Below, piece after piece: positions 434-32,860 of a stretch of 64,000 nucleotides of DNA (position 1 is its first letter; each line of letters opens with the position of its first letter). Position numbers and translations under genes: made by a program. Under the pieces are notes generated by a model. That model was not told the DNA's origin. It worked only from the letters and a program-made list of their open reading frames with translations, and did not search any database. Source of the stretch: Phallusia mammillata (taxonomy: Eukaryota); contig OZ281498.1 of NCBI GenBank assembly GCA_965637545.1, positions 19,778,001 through 19,842,000 of the forward strand. The letters are read 5' to 3'.

Positions 434-3050
434 TTTCGTACCATACATGACTTCAATTTTCCTTTCCTTTAACTTTTCTTGAATTTTAGTGCGAGCTTCA
501 GGCTCAAGCAAACTAGACACCAAAGTATCGCCGTTGTGGACAATGGTCATCTAAAAATAAGTGTACAAATGTCTGAAAAGATTATACTCTTAATGTCCTA
601 ATATATGTTTGCACATAGTGCATTTAGGTCTGTTGTTTTCCCTATTAAAATGCAGTTAAAAATGTTTAATGATTTTGGTTAAAAAGTAACAAAAAACTTT
701 GTGATAATAATGTAAAAAATATTTTTTGGTTAATGACAATTACAATTCAAAGTTTTTTCTTATGATTTACCCCCCAAAAATTTTACTCATAATAAGCTAA
801 AGTTTATTAAACAGAACAAAATACTTGTATATTTGTTACAGAAAAAACAGGATGTTTTGCAAAATAAATGAAAAAAATAATGGCAATGTACCTTTTTACC
901 CTCAGGATAGTCTCCAATAATTTCCCCAGCCATCTCGACGCCGACAGCGCCACCCCCAACGATTACAATGTTTTTAGCTTGCTTTATTTCATCTGTGAAA
1001 TCATTGTACATTTTCATCAGACTTTGAGTCGACATATCAAGTCTACACTTTCCAGGAAAGGGTCCACTGCTCCCTGTGGCAAGAACCAACTGAGTGTAGT
1101 TAATTGGTTCCTATGATAAAAAATGTATATTTTTATGAAGTAATTTCACACTTGGGTTATAAGAACACTCAAAAGTAGAATTTTGTTTTTGTCATAAAAC
1201 ACATAAAGTGTATTGCATGACTAGGCATTGTTACACTTTTTCATGTAGTAAAGTTTAACAGTAGCTAAAATTATTTTCAGAGGAAAAAAGATTATTTTAA
1301 AAGGACAAGCCAAATACAGCTAAAATGGCATGAAGTTTACAATAATACAACAAGTCTAGCCATGATTAACACATAAATGGTAAATCAGTGTTCTGCAATT
1401 CCTTGAACCGAAAATAACAACCGATCAATGAAAGTAAACATAGTACAGACCTTTCCTTCTTCGAGTGAAACTTGTTTGTTGGTAGTGTCAATATCAACAA
1501 CTTTTCCTTGCAAAAAGTTCGCACCAAAAGTTGGTTCATAAAATATAAAGGTTTTCTTCGCAAAACCTGGTTCCACAGCAGCCCTACAAGCAAAATAGAG
1601 AAATAATAGATACACCAGAACTGCTAAGAACTCATATTCTAATAACTAGGGCAAGTTTTTGTTGCACTAAAAACGTGAGAAAGTTGCACTTAATTTCAAC
1701 AAAAGTTGCAGTAAAAAGTTGCATTTATGCACAAGTTGCATTTATGCATACTTCTTGGAGTTAAAATGACTAGCGGGCTGCAGGTTGGACAATCCCTGCC
1801 TTAGACTGTCATCTTAACAGATATCAAGGTTATCGCTTCTTACTTGCAAAATAACGAATGCACTTTTATATAAAACTTTATGCTTGGCTGGGGTTGTTGA
1901 ACTTCTAGCTTGCAAGCCAATTGTTGCGTCATAGATAACATTGAGATGCAGCTAATCCATCACATAGCTCTTTGTTATGCAAATCAAAGAGAATAGAACC
2001 ATACTAAAAATAGTTTTATAGCATGTTTTTTAAATCACTCCTTTACATTTTGCGCGATACTTGATAAAAGTTGCACGAAAAATAGAAAAAAGTTGCAAAA
2101 AGTTGGAACATAAAATTCCTACAAACAGCTCATAACATCATACTACATAAATTCTGAGTATTTAGGAAGCTGCCGGAAGCTGTATAAAAAGGTGCAAAAG
2201 TTGCGGAAAAGGCTGTTTATGTCAATGATTTTTAAACTGTGATTTTTTGTAGGTAACAGATAAATGGAAAAACACCTTCAACATCAAAACAAATCATTCA
2301 CTCAGAAAAGTGTCTACAATGGTAATTTTTTGCTAAAGTTTAAAACAAACAAAACAATTTTTGTTAAAGAAACACAAGAATTTATACCTCACACAAAAGA
2401 CTTACTGGTGCAGCTTACCGTAAAGCAGCCATGTTGTGATGAAGAGCATCTCTTTGGTCAATTAGGGTAAAACTGCCCCTTCCTTTAAGCTTGTTTGCCA
2501 ACCTTGCACCCCCATAACCTCCTCCAACAATCACTACATGTTGATCTTCAGTTAGTCGCTTGCTGCAAAGTAAATTACAGTTTATAAAGACAGCAACAAA
2601 TGCAGAAACATCACAAATAGTGTACATGCATTTGCAATTTAACATATTTCATTTGTTGCCTCTATAGATAATATTCTTTATTTGTAAAAAAATGTTTTGT
2701 GGCAATGAGATTTTAGGTGGAAACACAATAATATACAGCTAAAATAAAACATGTATAATATGACAAAAATACTAGTCTTGCAAATTTAAGTGATGCTAAT
2801 TTTATACATAAAACAAATAACTAAAAAATATGTTTTGACAGTGTGAACCTTTCAGTTTAGCATAAACCAACTTCCATGTGCAAAAAAAGTATGCACACTA
2901 ATTTAGATGTAGCATTGTTTTATACCTAAATCACAATTAATAGTTTTGTTATTATTGTCTTTTTTTAATGACTCACCCAATATCTACAAAATATCTGTAA
3001 CCATACACAGCAGCTCCAACACCCAAACCAATTCCAAGCAATTTCGCCAT
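434..3050 (-). CDS. AIFM2: Ferroptosis suppressor protein 1 / apoptosis-inducing factor 2 (FAD-dependent NAD(P)H oxidoreductase), 5' part; 3' exons lie beyond position 1
   Basis: Exons 3050-2977, 2562-2419, 1583-1451, 1110-892, 550-434, all GT-AG and phase-consistent. Motifs [45 protein letters not shown] and [16 protein letters not shown] closely match vertebrate AIFM2. The first coding exon (3050-2977) is less certain than the others. Confidence 0.93.
1646..2215. repeat. Degenerate non-autonomous DNA-transposon-like element with AAGTTGC subterminal repeats (AIFM2 intron)
   Basis: Starts TAGGGC; about 9 copies of AAGTTG(C) cluster at 1685-1740 and 2068-2205; no TSD found. Confidence 0.4.
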
Positions 3051-3322
3051 TACAGCAATTAGTCAATAGTTGCAAACCACAAACCCTGTTGTAAAATGAA
3101 AGTTAATGAAACGTGTCTTTAACTTCAGTGCCTTTAAAACTACAGTATGTATAGCTCGCTTTGTTAACAATTTAGGCTTTTATGTGATTCTATGTTGCTA
3201 AAATTACAACTTTCTAGGCCTTTTGTAAAGATAATAATCTTTATCTGAAGTGCCAGAGTTGAGCATTTTCTCTTTACTTTTGCAGCATTTGTTGACTTGA
3301 CCGGCATGAGCCAAAAAAGCAA

Positions 3323-3478
3323 CAGGGGTTGTAACCAAAAATTGCCACTTGCCACTTGCCACCGGTTCAGTGGCAATTGCCACCGGTTCAGTGGCAATTG
3401 CCACCGATTCAGTGGCAAGTGTTTCGGTTGTCACCGGTTTCGGTGGCAAGTCGGTTTGGTTTTGGTGACAAGTGCAAA
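3323..3478 (+). repeat. Transposon-like terminus followed by TTGCCAC/GTGGCAA palindromic repeat array
   Basis: CAGGGGTTGTAACCAAAAATTGCCACTTGCCAC, then three 21-bp units TTGCCACCG(G/A)TTCAGTGGCAA; the terminus is an inverted match to about 6600-6630. Confidence 0.75.
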
Positions 3479-4158: not shown

Positions 4159-6024
4159 TCCTAGGCAGATGCACTACAAGCATAAATAAATCATTAATCT
4201 TGTTTATTGATGAACTTGCATGAACAAAGAAAATGGGTGCAAATAGGGCATTTATACTTTGGCTGTTGCTCAAGGAGGTGAACAAAATCGTAAGCACATC
4301 TAACAAAACAGCAGTAAGAAAAAACATTATGGTTAACGTCTGTGTCACCTTACTGCAAAAACATAATTAAGAGGAAATATAAAGTCCATCTAGTAATTGT
4401 CAAATAACATATCATAATGCAGTAACAAACAAAAAGCTTGACAATGCACATAGGCTTGTGTGTGTGCCAGAGGAGGAGAGTGCTTGCTCGACACTTAACT
4501 ACAAATTTATTACCTATAAACATTTTTCATTAAAGTATCACATGCTAACACATGATGAGTTGGTAATAGATCACAGAACAACTAAACATCCACGTAAGAA
4601 AATATGCTTGGGCGATCGCCAAAAGGACCATTAAAATCCAACATGGAAAGAGTAGTGATGGCACAATAGCTAACCATTCAAGTGTAATGAATAAATGTTG
4701 GATAGGGTAAAATTCCATAATAATTCACAAAACTATTATCAATCAATACAATATGCTAAAACAATGAAATATATGTAATGCTTGCATTCCATGGACCAGG
4801 TTATGTTCAGTTGCAGGTCAACAATATTGTGATGCAAATCAAATGTCCTTAAATCTTATACTAAAATATGCTTCGTAGAGAATCACACATCAATTCTGAA
4901 ATGATAAATAGAGCCAGCAATTATACAACAGATACAGAGCAATGTAAGTTTCCTTTGTACTAGAACAAAATTTAAGTCTAAGCAAGATAAAAGTCAAAAA
5001 TTGTCACTAATTAATTGTTGCTTTCACTCTGAGTCTGATTTAGAATGCAACATCATGGTTTCAATTGACAGCCATGGCGAGTAGACACCACGGCTTTAAG
5101 TAGCTGCCATGGCCAGTGGGCATCATGGCTTTAAGTAGCAACCTTGGCCAGAAACATATATGGCGAGAATAAGTTCTGCATCAAGTATTTAAATACCAGG
5201 TACAGCAACCTTGATATAAATGTCATAAAAGAACAGCTTATTGTGCATCAACATAGGGCAAAACGGTCCTTGCAACCAAGCAACTGCTAAGGGATTCCTT
5301 CACACCCACCACAAGGGATTGTGTGCTAATCAGAGGCAGAGCCAACTTTTTCAGCATGGGGTTATCTTTTCAACATGGCCTAACGATTAAAGTGTCTTAA
5401 CTCTAAAAAGACAACTCTCCACTTCGTTGATGGGTATCAAGACAACTACATGTGATAAATATGTAATTAGTCCCAAACAAAAAGTTGGAATTGACAGTGT
5501 TCACAGTACTTGACTCCCTATAACATTAGCAATTGGAAAAAAAGTAACATAACATGTTTGGCATAGCTTGCTAAAAAAAATACATTTCACCAACTTACAT
5601 GTTGCTGTCTCAATGAACATAATCGTCTGAGTGTTTGTCTATTTCCACTTTTGCATGTATTTTCATGCTCCTGTGAGACTTTATGTCAGAGAGTTTTTGT
5701 ATGGTTAAAATCAAATGTTTATGAGATTACTTTTCCATGTTTGAAAGCAAGGTTAAGTCCTTTTACAGATTGAATTAATCTCATTTTCTTAATCTCATTT
5801 TCAACTGTCAGCTAAGTCAGGCTCACAATTGTTATGAATTAAGTAGAAATTTCAGCCATTGAAATTTGTAGACTTGTTGTTTTCAACGATTTCAATCTGA
5901 CCAATTCACAATGGCGGGATTATTCCATGAACACATGCAAATTCGTTGCAAACTAACGACGATGTTAAGTTCAGTAAAAAGGTGTTCGTTTAACTGTTCG
6001 TTCGGTAATAAGCGAACTTTTCAT

Positions 6025-6630
6025 TCAGTGGCTACCGAACCTTCAGTGGCAACCAAACCTTCAGTGGCAACCGAACCTTCAGTGGCAAGTCTCATCCGAT
6101 CGGAACGTTCAGTGGCAAGTCTCATCCGATCTGAACGTTCAGTGGCAAGTCTCTTTGAGTTTGAACACGTCCAGTCATAGAAACCAAATACATTTGACAG
6201 ACGCAATCATCTACATTATATATACTCATCAAAAAAATTAGCATGCAGAATTTTTCTTTTTCACCTCACCAAAACTCAATCTGAGAGTTTTATTCGCATT
6301 ATAATCGTCCACGAATGGATATTTGCTTGTCTCGGCATCGAGGTTTACATCTCTTGCCGTTGAGACATTTAACACATTTACTTGCCCCTTGCCAACCAGA
6401 CTTGTCTACAAAACTTGCCACTTGCCAACAATACTTGCCACTTGCCAACAACGCTTGCCACTTGCCAACAACGCTTGCCACTTGCCAACAACGCTTGCCA
6501 CTTGCCAACAAGACTTGCCACCAACACTTGCCACTTGCCAACAACGCTTGCCACTTGCCACAAAAATTTCTTGCTTGCCACCGGATTGAGTGGCAACCGT
6601 GGCAAGTGGCAATTTTTGGTTACGACCCTC
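6025..6630 (-). repeat. AGTGGCAA/TTGCCAC tandem arrays ending in a transposon-like terminus
   Basis: 17- and 29-bp units at 6025-6150; about 7 copies of the 20-bp unit CTTGCCACTTGCCAACAACG at 6415-6560; terminus reverse complement AGGGTCGTAACCAAAAATTGCCACTTGCCAC matches 3323-3355. Confidence 0.8.
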
Positions 6631-7492
6631 ACTCCAAAAAAGACATTTTCCTTTTTCTTTTGCTCTCTTTTTTACGCTTCACCTCACTTTCAAAAAAAGA
6701 AAAAAAGCAGGTCACGTAGCGCTCTTCTGTAATCGCTGTCTAAAAACAAGATCCCAAAGCGATTGCTTACAAAAAAACCTACATGAAAGCTGTTTTTTTC
6801 AATCAAACCTGTGGCCCAATTAAGTCTTCGAAGCAACAGTTTCTTCCGAATCTGTTAAAACTCTCCAAGACGACTTTGCAATGCGAAAGAACGAAGTTTC
6901 GCCGCATGTTTTCTGCAACGGACCGTGTTCTGAACGAAAATTTGTTAAAAAGACCAAAAAACTTATTTTCCTTTGAAACAGAAAAAGTTCTTGTTTTTTT
7001 GAAAATTACACCTAATTTCAAAACGATTAGGTTTATACCTATTTCTTTTATACTCAGATACACCCATAAGCAATGGCATCCACTTTTGCGACGAAATTTC
7101 GTACAAACTGTACGACGCTGTTTGTGGGAGTTACCTAGCATCGAAACTTGTCCCAGGAACACACGGAAGTATATTGGACCAATCGTCTTTGTGCACATTA
7201 GTTTGCCTTTGGTTAGACTTAATTATCATGTTTTTTTCTGTGTTTGGTAGCGGAATCAAATTAATCGCACAGAAATAGCGTTATTTCGTTCCGTTATGAA
7301 ACACGTTTTCGTGTGTAAAGGTTTATAGACGAAATTCGGTTACGAAAGTGCTGAATCGTAGTTTAATTTCATTTTTCACCAGCAATCTGTCAAACTTTAG
7401 TAGCAAAGTAGCCTAATGCCTGAGAGACCGACTTGATGCCCCTAGCCGTTGTGTAGCCTACTATTATTTAACTTCAAGTAGAGGGTATAACA

Positions 7493-7771
7493 CAGTGGTC
7501 GACAATCCCAAGGTTTTTCATGGCACGCCAACCGATTTGCCTGTTTATATTGTAGTAACAATTTAACCTGTTACACTGCTAGTTTATAGTTTTTATCATG
7601 CAATTGTCTTAAAATTCAGCCTTTCATGAACAAAACACTCTGATTTGTCTTTATTATTGATATCTGCTGGCACGAACCACTATTATTTTGAAAAACGTTG
7701 GAACACGAGGTTATTAACACACGGAAACAACAAGTAATGGCATGCGTCGCCTGAAAGGTTGCCGACCCCTG
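7493..7771. mobile_element. hAT MITE
   Basis: TIRs CAGTGGTCGACAA / TTGCCGACCCCTG; exact 8-bp TSD GTATAACA (7485-7492, 7772-7779). Confidence 0.88.
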
Positions 7772-9074
7772 GTATAACAGAAGAAAAACTCATTCATCAA
7801 ACGGACTGATTGCCAGTAGTAGCAACGGTTTAAAAACTTTAAATGTTTTCATATTTCTTCTTGTTTTCCTGATGACCTGTTCTTGGATTATACTTAAATG
7901 AAGATCAACATTGTCACTCTTGTTCTTAACATTGCATGTGGTATTTCCACCTTCTGCATACATGAGAATAAAACAGTTTATTAACTAAGTTTTTTCCCTA
8001 TTGACTAAAACTAAATGGAAATTTATTAAACCTGCAATTAAAAGTTAAAAAAAATATAGATCTTTCAAATTTCGGCATGTTTCATATTCGATTCCAGGTT
8101 TCCAACCTTGAAATTTCCCCCAAAAAAGTGTTTTGCAAAATGTCCAAGAGAATAGGCCTATAGCTTCCCCAAAACCTGAAAAACAAAGGACAACCCCAAC
8201 AAAGATATGCTCTCTTTCTAGCATTACAAAAAAAATGAGTTTTATCAAAGCAAAATTTTCAAAATACCTGAATACCAACTTTTTTTCATAGCTCCTCAAT
8301 TTTTTTCCTTTCATATCAAAACATACCCAACATTCTGACATGAAAAAATCCTGTATATTCCCTGTAGCCTACTACATGCAATTCCGACGTTTGGCAGTTA
8401 ACATGATAAAACCGAAGAGTAATAAATAAACATACAATATGGCAACGTATAGCGTAAATAGTTAGACAAACTGATACCAAAGGCACAACGCAGACAGAGT
8501 TAAGATTACTTACCCTACCTTGTTAAGCACAAGTAACGCTTTCACAGTTCCACAATTCCGGTTGATGATGGACAGTCTTATACGTTAACATGCATGTTTA
8601 AATTTGAGGTTGTCAGCAAGTGAAAGAACAATTAAAGGTTGTAGGATTCCGAGGAAATCTAAAACAGAGGGGAGGAATCAAATCAAAATAGTTAAAAAGA
8701 CGCTAACATGCAATTAAACGAAAAAGACGATAAGAATATAAAACATGTTGTGTGGAATAATCCAAACAGTAAGCTATCAAACGCTGTTTTGCCTAAACGC
8801 CGAAGTGATAAGGTAGAAATTACTTACATGACAAGCATGTACTAGTTACAGGAAAAAGGTGTCCGAAAGTTGATTCAAACTTCGCAAACTGAAAAGAACT
8901 CAGTGAACCAAATAGTCTGCCACATAACTGCAAATAATTTTACTTTGTACAATAAGGTAACATTCCGGTATCAGTAACTACTTTATTTGATAACTACTGT
9001 ATTGTGCTTTTCACTCGATTTTTAGAACAAGGAAGACCAACAAAGTAACAACCCGATAAAACGTATAGGTATAC

Positions 9075-9193
9075 CTTGCAAACTTCGCCAGTTCTCCACC
9101 TCAGCAGGCTTTCACCTTCACAAGCCTGAAGTGACTTTTTGCAAGGCAAGATTTGACGCGTTTTAGAATACGCTTTGATTGGACGTGACGTCA
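9075..9193 (-). promoter_or_regulatory. Putative AIFM2 promoter and non-coding first exon
   Basis: CRE palindrome TGACGTCA 9186-9193, CCAAT box 9178-9182 (minus), minus-strand donor AAG|GTATAC at 9075/9074; further GG|GTAAGT donor near 8512 and acceptor at 3086 just before the ATG. The TSS is inferred only. Confidence 0.4.
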
Positions 9194-9401
9194 AGAGATT
9201 TGTCAAGCGTGTCGGATGGTTATTTTTTTATTGAACCAGGCTGGCTGAACTTATTACTTTTATTTCAAATAGATTAAATAGATGTTAACCAATGGGAACC
9301 TGTGTACTGATTCCACAGGAAACCAATTGATAAATGTGTAAGTTACATTTGGACACAGATGTCTTTTTATAAGTTGGGCAATTAGCACAGTCAAATTTTA
9401 G

Positions 9402-9611
9402 GGTAGAGCTACTAACACTGAGCTTTGGCTGGGGCCTGGTCTGGGAATTTTTGGGAGGTGGCGCAACGGAGCATAGGCGTTTATGGTGCTGACTCAGCAA
9501 TTTGGGTTTATTGTAAGAATGATTGCTGAGTCAGCACCATAAACGCCTATGCTCCGTTGCGCCACCTACCAAACCGGGCCCCAGCCAAAGTTCAGTGTTA
9601 GTAGTTTTACC
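9402..9611. mobile_element. Mutator-like foldback MITE
   Basis: Almost fully palindromic; perfect 46-bp inner arms 9456-9501 and 9522-9567, near-perfect outer arms, GG...CC termini; exact 9-bp TSD AAATTTTAG (9393-9401, 9612-9620). Confidence 0.88.
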
Positions 9612-9921
9612 AAATTTTAGATGTTTAGGAATAAACACAGCCGAATCTTTTTGGTCTGTACACAATTATATGTCTTTATTTTAACTTTTTTTGCCAACTG
9701 TTTACTCTTGAACCCAGGTAATTGTCTACTTCACATGGATACCTGACTGTGGCCTGAAGGCCGGCTGTTGCTAACGTTTGGAGTTTTATAACTTATCTGC
9801 TGTCCATGAATGACTTAAATATGATGGGGCTACCTATATCGTTCGTTGATGCGTCGTTAAGGAACGGCTATTCATATATAGCATGGTGAAACATTTTGGG
9901 CGAAACACTCAGCCTTTAAAT

Positions 9922-10401
9922 CAGTGTTTCATACCGGAACGGAACGGAACGTTATACCGGAACGAAATAAATATTTTTTGGCTCAAATACCGGAACGAAA
10001 TACCGAAATAAAAAATATTCAAAATACCGGAACGGAACGAAATACCGTTAAATTTTATTCCGGTATTTCGTTCTGGACATTTGACGTGATACAATTGCTC
10101 AAAAATTTCGCGCCGTTAGGCTATAATAAAAATTGAAGCTCCTACAATTTACATCCGTTTGACCATCATTGACAAATGTTATGTGACGTAACAACTACCG
10201 ACAATAATTATTGTGTGTTGCAAGACCACAAACAAATGTTCGTTTGTTAAGACCGAAATACCGAAAAATACCGTTATAAATTTATTTCGGTCAGACCGGA
10301 ACGAAATGAAAATATCGGTCCAGAACGAAATAACGAAATAAATAATTTGCTCAGAACGAATAACGTTATTTCGTTTCGTTCCGTTCCGGTATGAAACACT
10401 G
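9922..10401. mobile_element. hAT non-autonomous element with ACCGGAACGAAAT subterminal repeats
   Basis: 25-bp TIR CAGTGTTTCATACCGGAACGGAACG at both ends; exact 8-bp TSD CTTTAAAT (9914-9921, 10402-10409). Confidence 0.92.
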
Positions 10402-11243
10402 CTTTAAATACACAAAACGTAGTGTTGAGCTGAATACAAATGGCCTGTAGAAACATGTATCGACCTGACAAGCATATATCTGTCTGGTATAAACGTATAC
10501 TAACATTCAAACCCGACAAAATTGGTTGAAAGTCCATGGGGTGGAACCTGTAATGCAAGTTTGAAAGATGCAAAACTCTCACCAACAAAACCAGTCTTCT
10601 CGCAGTTTCTATAGCAACGGGTTGTATTTTTGCTTTGCGAATAATTCCAACACGAAATAAGTTTAAAAACAGAACACAATTCCTCGCAAGCGCGAGCGGT
10701 GAGAGAGAAAAATACATTAACAGCAATTACAGCTAGTAGTATTGCATGTATGTACAAACCACGGTCATCTAAAACACTTCACCGATAATGATATCCTGCT
10801 AGCAATTCGAGGATGAAATGGGAATATATCACATAAGTAAGGTCCATCGACTCGCCGAAGTGTCAAAACTGCATTTTTTCGACACACAAATGAAACTTGG
10901 GTCTAGAATGTAACTGAGGTCACGAGGCCGCTGAAACATGGCGATGGCTGGTGGATAAACCACTACGTTTCGTTGTCCCGATTGGGACAGTTTCCTACTG
11001 TAACAAACCAAGCATCGATTGCAGGCGAAGATACCACAGCGTGTATATAAGTAAAGCACAGCGTACGAAAAAACAAACAAACTTATGTCGTGTCTTTGCT
11101 CCTGGTTTTATGAACTTAAAACACGGGGATTGTGTGACCATCCAATAGAATTTCCTTCCCACAAACTCGCCAATGGATTTTGGCAATGACGGACGTCGCC
11201 CACTACTGCTATGTACTAGCGCGCGCGAAGGCACTGGGTGGCG

Positions 11244-32860
<21,617 letters not shown>

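Follow-up and report, generated by a model that had tools for sequence, protein, structure and literature searches.

A foldback element in the genome of the ascidian Phallusia mammillata, lying between a TAO-kinase gene and the gene for ferroptosis suppressor protein 1 (FSP1, AIFM2), raises the question of whether a young transposon has carried binding sites of the Maf and NRF2 type to the promoter of a ferroptosis-defence gene. That proposal was made in an earlier note on this DNA. Here, the window denotes the whole 64-kb stretch of DNA that was analyzed, and positions refer to the window unless a genomic locus is named. The answer that we consider probable is a plainer one: the element is a real but ordinary MITE insertion near a probable promoter, its motif is borne by its family, and the insertion is likely neutral or a modest modifier. 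The evidence is taken up in turn for the element and its family, the neighboring transcript, the motif, and FSP1.

The element of Phallusia mammillata spans 210 bp, from 9402 to 9611, and the foldback structure, the 9-bp target-site duplication and the 46-bp perfect arms described in the earlier note are all present where that note had placed them:

9393-9401, unstranded: target-site duplication (9 bp), left copy, AAATTTTAG, repeated at 9612-9620
9612-9620, unstranded: target-site duplication (9 bp), right copy, AAATTTTAG
9402..9611, unstranded: foldback MITE of 210 bp, of a shorter subfamily
9402..9420, plus strand: left terminal inverted repeat (TIR), GGTAGAGCTACTAACACTG
9593..9611, minus strand: right TIR, an imperfect inverted copy of GGTAGAGCTACTAACACTG
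9456..9501, unstranded: left inner arm, perfect, 46 bp, from the sequence
9522..9567, unstranded: right inner arm, perfect, 46 bp, from the sequence
9487..9499, unstranded: T-MARE 13-mer, TGCTGACTCAGCA, with the AP-1/TRE core TGACTCA
9524..9536, unstranded: T-MARE 13-mer, TGCTGAGTCAGCA, the reverse complement of TGCTGACTCAGCA

The two inner arms are separated by a spacer of 20 nt, and folding of the MITE as single-stranded DNA returned one long hairpin (-105.4 kcal/mol, z = -22.5). Cruciform extrusion of the element is conceivable, and is rendered less favorable by the 20-nt spacer and a 10-nt bulge. Relative to the modal 220-bp form of the family, the window MITE possesses 10 bp fewer in the outer part of one arm, and its right TIR differs by one change private to this copy, reading GGTAAAAC where GGTAGAAC is common at that end. 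The element bears no long open reading frame (ORF), only short ORFs derived from the hairpin. An Rfam scan of the MITE yielded sub-threshold miRNA-hairpin matches only, as any long hairpin would, and a tRNA scan yielded no tRNA; with these two scans, a ribozyme or a tRNA-derived core was rejected.

Querying the genome with the 19-bp terminus, as GGTAGARCTACTAACACTG, with at most one mismatch allowed, returned 735 matches, and the reversed control returned 0. With the 210-bp element as query, 481 first-look candidates were obtained, and at least 40 scored places besides this copy have an identity of 87-95%. For a sample blind to the motif, we took every TIR-bearing place listed on contig 1; both ends were present in 37 copies. 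Duplications of 9 bp flank 33 of these 37 (28 perfect, 5 with one mismatch), and the duplicated sequence is different at each insertion, in agreement with the prior claim that the element is a mobile, non-autonomous transposon. Copy length in this sample is modal at 220 bp (18 copies), with 210 bp found in 5. Several subfamilies can be distinguished, with the divergence between them residing mainly in the subterminal 20-55 bp. With 19-bp TIRs, a duplication of fixed 9-bp length, and a small, multi-copy and non-coding body, the element is a member of a bona fide MITE family that numbers several hundred copies in Phallusia mammillata. No description of this family was found in the literature searched, and on present evidence the family is undescribed but typical.

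The course of the insertion can be reconstructed in outline. The window MITE would have been inserted as a non-autonomous DNA transposon by a cut-and-paste mechanism, in which a staggered cut of the target left the 9-bp duplication behind. The nearest sampled relative is 94.8% identical, and approximately six private changes, counted by eye, distinguish the window MITE from its closest aligned copies; judged by these differences, the copy appears recent enough for a perfect duplication to have persisted, yet not brand-new, and moderately diverged. Elsewhere in the genome, at least eight near-identical copies with equal scores lie inside 370 kb (G000:C2:3052364-3420678), a cluster which suggests that they form part of a larger tandem or segmental duplication.

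The superfamily to which these copies belong was less readily settled. The label 'Mutator-like', which the earlier note had drawn from the length of the duplication, is best read as a lead. A duplication of 9-11 bp is a Mutator hallmark that the 9 bp of the MITE fits, and it is not exclusive to Mutator; because Merlin elements likewise make 8-9-bp duplications, the family may belong to Mutator or to another superfamily. MULE domains are found in the Phallusia mammillata genome. Flanks of ±1.5 kb around 20 MULE-domain loci, where the MULEs are longer than those flanks, contained no match to the MITE termini, and neither did such flanks around 12 IS1595/Merlin-type loci; the termini were also absent from one NOF-type Mutator locus (L037). 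The label is thus left with a duplication that fits and with no autonomous partner bearing these termini at the loci searched. Three further places had been considered as autonomous elements or their ends and were rejected. One long-spaced TIR pair on contig 1 (L031) is really a MITE into which 2.4 kb of DNA lacking long ORFs has been inserted, a second (L032) consists of an LTR retroelement between MITE pieces, and the interior of a solo TIR (L097) is single-copy DNA.

Whether the MITE has a promoter to act upon depends on the DNA at its lower-numbered side, which we queried with RNA contigs of four runs on the stretch 5301-11300; the FSP1 acceptor, at approximately 3079, is outside that stretch. 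The contigs show GT-AG joints and sharp 3' ends, that is, they behave as RNA. The features of this region are:

9178-9182, minus strand: CCAAT box (ATTGG on the plus strand), motif match
9186-9193, minus strand: palindromic CRE TGACGTCA, motif match
9289 and 9323: further CCAAT boxes, motif match
9075..9104, minus strand: 3'-terminal 30 nt of the first exon observed; the RNA contigs (runs X13 and X1) extend no further 5'
8828..8927, minus strand: exon 2, 100 nt, RNA contigs
8519..8658, minus strand: exon 3, 140 nt, RNA contigs, splice sites checked
8073..8175, minus strand: exon 4, the contig end at 8073 lying inside the exon and not at a splice site
10604..11244, minus strand: TAO-kinase gene upstream, 3' UTR; contigs of all four runs stop at 10604-10624, and the ORF ends at 11244

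The CRE and CCAAT cluster at 9178..9193 is a putative core promoter. The minus-strand donor that follows it (exon end 9075, GT 9074-9073) is used in runs X13 and X1, which come from different studies, and hence the donor singled out in the earlier note is borne out, just downstream of the motif cluster. The joints of the minus-strand RNA fall at 8927/9075, 8658/8828 and 8173-5/8517-9, all of them GT..AG, and its introns of 147, 169 and 343 nt possess good polypyrimidine tracts. Beyond exon 4 there are AATAAA signals at 8027-8022 and 7982-7977. Joined together, the four exon pieces contain 6 ATGs, and the longest ORF is 22 amino acids. Judged by these sequence features, the four-exon RNA of 8073-9104 is more suggestive of a short non-coding RNA with a poly(A) tail than of a 5' UTR. 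Its contig depth is 3.7-5.9 as compared to 48-397 for the TAO kinase, contig depth being a poor measure of abundance. The RNA, which lies between TAO kinase and FSP1 and is weakly expressed, may be an independent lncRNA. A transcript that is supported by RNA, possesses no long ORF and has a probable promoter between these two genes bears on the annotation of the locus.

That the contigs reach 30 nt into the first exon does not map the start, because 30 equals the assembler's k-1. A short 5' piece clipped off by the assembler as a dead end would fit a transcription start site (TSS) within ~100 nt. With a genuine donor following the CRE/CCAAT cluster, a promoter could plausibly lie ~200-300 bp from the MITE. 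The TAO-kinase gene ends at ~10604, and 1.4 kb separate this 3' end from the first exon of the minus-strand RNA; the MITE lies in that interval, about 300 bases upstream of the RNA.

The alternative that survives best concerns this very geometry. The exon ending at 9075 could be an internal or alternative 3' exon that is fed from the TAO kinase, in which case the MITE would be intronic and would have no promoter beside it. The coincidence of the contig stop with k-1 is consistent with an exon that extends further, and an acceptor-like CTTCAG (boundary after the G) is present at ~9125. However, RNA depth in run X13 is absent from 9105 to the 3' end of the TAO kinase, bar pieces derived from repeats, the TAO-kinase contigs end at 10604-10624 in four of the four runs, and a short 5' piece clipped by the assembler would fit a nearby TSS better. 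We regard a TAO-kinase-fed exon as unlikely, though still deserving of consideration, and a promoter between the MITE and the donor as the preferred reading.

Several observations attach to the surrounding sequence. The interval 9918-10412 holds another repeat, which contains ATACCGGAACGRAA units and a long hairpin with sub-threshold miRNA-like Rfam matches. Because contigs from other copies of this repeat break at its edges (9918/9922 and 10408/10412), most of the spacer between the TAO kinase and the first exon is transposon-derived. Tandem arrays at 5900-6700 and 3356-3418, with units of 18-53 bp of the GCCAAC/GTGGCAA type, exhibit high RNA contig depth in three runs, a depth that probably stems from many genomic copies. 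A contig of run X13 has a loose end of 20 T just before 11178, inside the coding end of the TAO kinase, which may be an internal poly(A) site or a priming artefact. Contig depth over the element itself, present in runs X1 and X5, was weighed as a sign of its transcription and was set aside: at least in X5 the depth derives from another family copy, into whose sequence the contig runs on; that contig matches the copy type of the G000:C2:3052364-3420678 cluster.

We then come to the motif. Both window sites are exact instances of the 13-bp T-MARE palindrome TGCTGA(C/G)TCAGCA, and there are no others in the 64-kb window. The two count as one event, because the inverted arms make the second follow from the first. 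In the 240-Mb genome the T-MARE 13-mer was observed 545 times, compared to ~3.6 expected from base composition, an excess so far above chance because repeat families carry it. In at least 185 arms, across several subfamilies, the TIR core stands at the family spacing from a T-MARE. Other copies of the MITE do carry the motif, which the earlier note had raised as a check: 26 of the 37 motif-blind copies have at least one perfect T-MARE. Two are found in only 2 of the 37, and both of these are the closest relatives of the window copy, so that the 'two perfect elements' which had drawn attention to this locus are indeed there but represent a minority state of the family.

Separately, we examined 20 T-MAREs on contig 1 that have no TIR match nearby. 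Approximately a third are diverged relatives of the MITE family, about six are apparently unique, four are in a different repeat, and two constitute a duplicate pair. The different repeat (L117, L125, L128 and L135 on contig 1), unrelated to the MITE, bears the exact T-MARE in an AT-rich context (...GGTGAGCGCCTAATTTTGCTGACTCAGCAAAAAAATT...); it follows that more than one repeat family spreads the 13-mer in this genome. By this census, nearly all perfect T-MAREs of the Phallusia mammillata genome are repeat-borne, which bears on motif-based searches for Maf and NRF targets in ascidians.

T-MARE sites contain the TRE core TGA(C/G)TCA and the minimal antioxidant response element (ARE) TGACnnnGC. 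The minimal ARE taken by itself, as TGAYNNNGC, is no commoner in the window than chance predicts (42 occurrences, 44 expected). The palindromic 13-bp MARE is favored by small-Maf homodimers, which repress; the CNC-sMaf element is non-palindromic, with A/G flanking the CNC half-site before TGA, and CNC-sMaf heterodimers often bind MAREs as well (PMC9756947). The window sites have a C before TGA on both strands and do not match the CNC-sMaf consensus [A/G]TGA(C/G)nnnGC. The description of the sites as 'Maf/NRF2-type' is accordingly right as to the exact T-MARE with its minimal ARE, and overstated as to NRF2, given that the A/G flank of the CNC half-site is absent. Candidate factors are encoded at the following loci:

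C3:22491859-22492550: CNC factor, with the CNC motif and basic region in adjacent exons
L137: second CNC/BACH-like basic region
L034: small-Maf-like exon
L033: Maf-like exon
L035: Jun
L036: Fos

Genes for CNC, small Maf, Maf, Jun and Fos factors are thus present in the genome, a set that agrees with the one Nrf locus and Keap1 described for ascidians (PMC6155405). If any factor binds the MITE, Maf homodimers would be favored, with CNC-small Maf and AP-1 as weaker competitors.

In a second alternative, the MAREs would be functional on a target other than FSP1, the MITE serving as a Maf/AP-1 site that tunes, or under small Maf represses, the promoter of the adjacent RNA or the TAO kinase. The closest transcription unit is the four-exon RNA, whose start lies at 9104 or higher, Maf homodimers have their optimum in the palindromic MARE, which has a TRE at its core, and Jun, Fos, Maf and small-Maf genes are all encoded. 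Against this, the transcript is rare by contig depth, poor measure though that is (3.7-5.9 versus 48-397), and since the same site occurs at hundreds of other places, most copies are presumably inert. We consider such a function improbable. The reading that we prefer, a MITE that is most likely neutral at this locus and at most a modest modifier of the neighboring promoter, takes neutrality as its default; what speaks against neutrality is that the MITE is within enhancer range of a probable promoter and that the bZIP factors needed are encoded.

Column identity in the family alignment is 0.97 for the TIRs, the best conserved part of the family, 0.92-0.94 for the inner arms, 0.90 for the loop, 0.89 for the T-MARE motif and 0.79 for the subterminal parts. 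As far as the alignment can tell, the T-MARE was inherited from the MITE family and is conserved no better than neighboring columns. In the arm of the 9487-9499 site, 17 of 34 motif-blind copies have TGCTGTTACAGCA and 9 of 34 the T-MARE; in the arm of the 9524-9536 site, 20 of 34 keep the perfect T-MARE. The main 220-bp subfamily combines TGCTGTTACAGCA in one arm with the T-MARE TGCTGAGTCAGCA in the other. As compared to TGCTGAGTCAGCA, TGCTGTTACAGCA retains the outer TGCTG...CAGCA with three central bases changed. In the subfamily of the window MITE the arms are symmetric, as if one had been copied onto the other. The preferred account of the paired sites is that they arrived with the MITE, as one family-borne sequence that is doubled by the near-perfect inverted arms of this subfamily.

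The same alignment bears on a third alternative, namely that the 13-mer is kept for the transposon itself, as a transposase-binding sequence or a sub-palindrome at the hairpin tip, with the match to a host site being incidental. The conservation of the inner arms across subfamilies, well above that of the subterminal parts (0.92-0.94 as against 0.79), is in keeping with such a need, and TGCTGTTACAGCA, by retaining the outer TGCTG...CAGCA, is more in line with a small stem-loop than with an AP-1 core. A third common variant, TGCTGAGTGAGCA, breaks the small stem, however, the presence of the exact T-MARE in one or more unrelated repeats is easier to reconcile with a host-factor site, and the family is one without a known transposase. 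On this evidence, retention of the 13-mer for the needs of the transposon is rather improbable. A broader proposition would be that the MITE family and at least one unrelated repeat have seeded hundreds of perfect Maf elements, at ~150 times chance, of which a subset, possibly including the window copy, has been co-opted as enhancers responsive to CNC/Maf or AP-1, thereby constituting a transposon-built stress or Maf regulon; we hold this to be a speculative and quite improbable outcome.

There remains FSP1, the gene for which the stress-wiring idea was conceived:

2976..3050, minus strand: first coding exon of AIFM2/FSP1, with the ATG at 3050 and an acceptor-like site at ~3079

The distance from the window MITE to the FSP1 ATG is 6,352 bp, with FSP1 downstream. 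Exons of this downstream gene are 98.5-100% identical to P0156 (UniRef: 'Ferroptosis suppressor protein 1, Phallusia mammillata'), and the product of exon 3050-2976 matches the N-terminus of P0156 without a difference. Among the RNA contigs on record, none encodes this protein. The N-terminus encoded at 2976-3050 is hydrophobic, a property in common with other tunicate FSP1 proteins (P0001, P0003). Vertebrate FSP1 has a Gly2 myristoylation signal; the tunicate N-terminus is hydrophobic instead.

The minus-strand donor had been described as 'leading toward AIFM2'. The donor is used, but its acceptor is only 147 nt away and is followed by exons without an ORF longer than 22 amino acids. Over the stretch 5301-11300, the contigs follow the chain from donor 9075 through 8927, 8658 and 8175 to their end at 8073 within an exon, with the FSP1 acceptor (~3079) outside that stretch. 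None of these contigs joins the chain to the exon with the FSP1 ATG, although they leave room for a less frequent splice that would link the two. Ascidian mRNAs are commonly trans-spliced, and the acceptor near 3079 could take a spliced leader. That an RNA starting near the MITE continues into FSP1 is unlikely, though far from negligible. Mammalian FSP1 is a published KEAP1/NRF2 target, in agreement with the earlier note (PMC9033817, PMC9584440).

The least probable alternative, that the MITE gives FSP1 two CNC/NRF-small Maf elements, makes it inducible by oxidative or electrophile stress and spreads such elements with its family, can invoke perfect T-MAREs containing TGACTCAGC, at least one of them in 26 of 37 MITE copies, a used donor and CRE/CCAAT cluster 300-390 bp away, one CNC locus with small-Maf-like and Maf-like genes in an ascidian setting of Nrf and Keap1 (PMC6155405), and the control of mammalian FSP1 by NRF2 (PMC9033817, PMC9584440), but we judge it very improbable in view of a splice chain that leads to six ATGs, no ORF beyond 22 amino acids and polyadenylation signals rather than to FSP1, an FSP1 ATG at a distance of 6.35 kb and preceded by a possible trans-splice acceptor, a C before TGA on both strands where the CNC half-site prefers A/G, and a motif conserved no better than its neighbors in a family in whose main subfamily one arm bears a palindrome other than the MARE.

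Taken as a whole, the locus can be set beside several known systems. With its 9-bp duplication, an inverted repeat of nearly the whole length, a non-coding body and a high copy number, the MITE resembles MITEs of the Mutator superfamily and foldback elements of the FB/NOF and Rehavkus types, and it differs from Mutator and FB/NOF systems in that no autonomous element with its termini was found at the MULE, IS1595/Merlin-type and NOF-type loci or the contig-1 TIR pairs. A useful outcome is a clean definition of the MITE family by its termini, its 9-bp duplication and its 210- and 220-bp forms. Among bZIP sites, the MITE has the exact 13-bp TRE-type palindrome, TRE core and minimal ARE in common with T-MARE and CsMBE (ARE) sites, and departs from the CsMBE in being palindromic with C before TGA, whereas the CsMBE is non-palindromic with A/G at that position (PMC9756947).

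The closest precedent for the stress-wiring idea is Bari-Jheh of Drosophila melanogaster, a natural Bari1 (Tc1/mariner) insertion that adds antioxidant response elements and is reported to upregulate Jheh1 and Jheh2 under oxidative stress, and which, like the element described here, is a DNA transposon with ARE-type sites upstream of genes (PMC6093896). Bari-Jheh is full-length and is backed by population-genetic and expression evidence, whereas the window element is a 210-bp MITE known from its sequence; the ARE there is of the CnC type, whereas the MITE has a palindromic Maf site and its nearest transcript is not the proposed target. Were the stress wiring true, it would present a chordate transposon family that rewires a ferroptosis-defence gene, comparable to Bari-Jheh. 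Transposons that spread transcription-factor sites are further exemplified by mPing in rice and by AP-1-bearing LTRs in mammals, for which there is binding or expression evidence. Like these, the Phallusia mammillata family has placed one MITE-borne motif at hundreds of loci, some of them beside promoters, a distribution that is known here from a census of the genome sequence.
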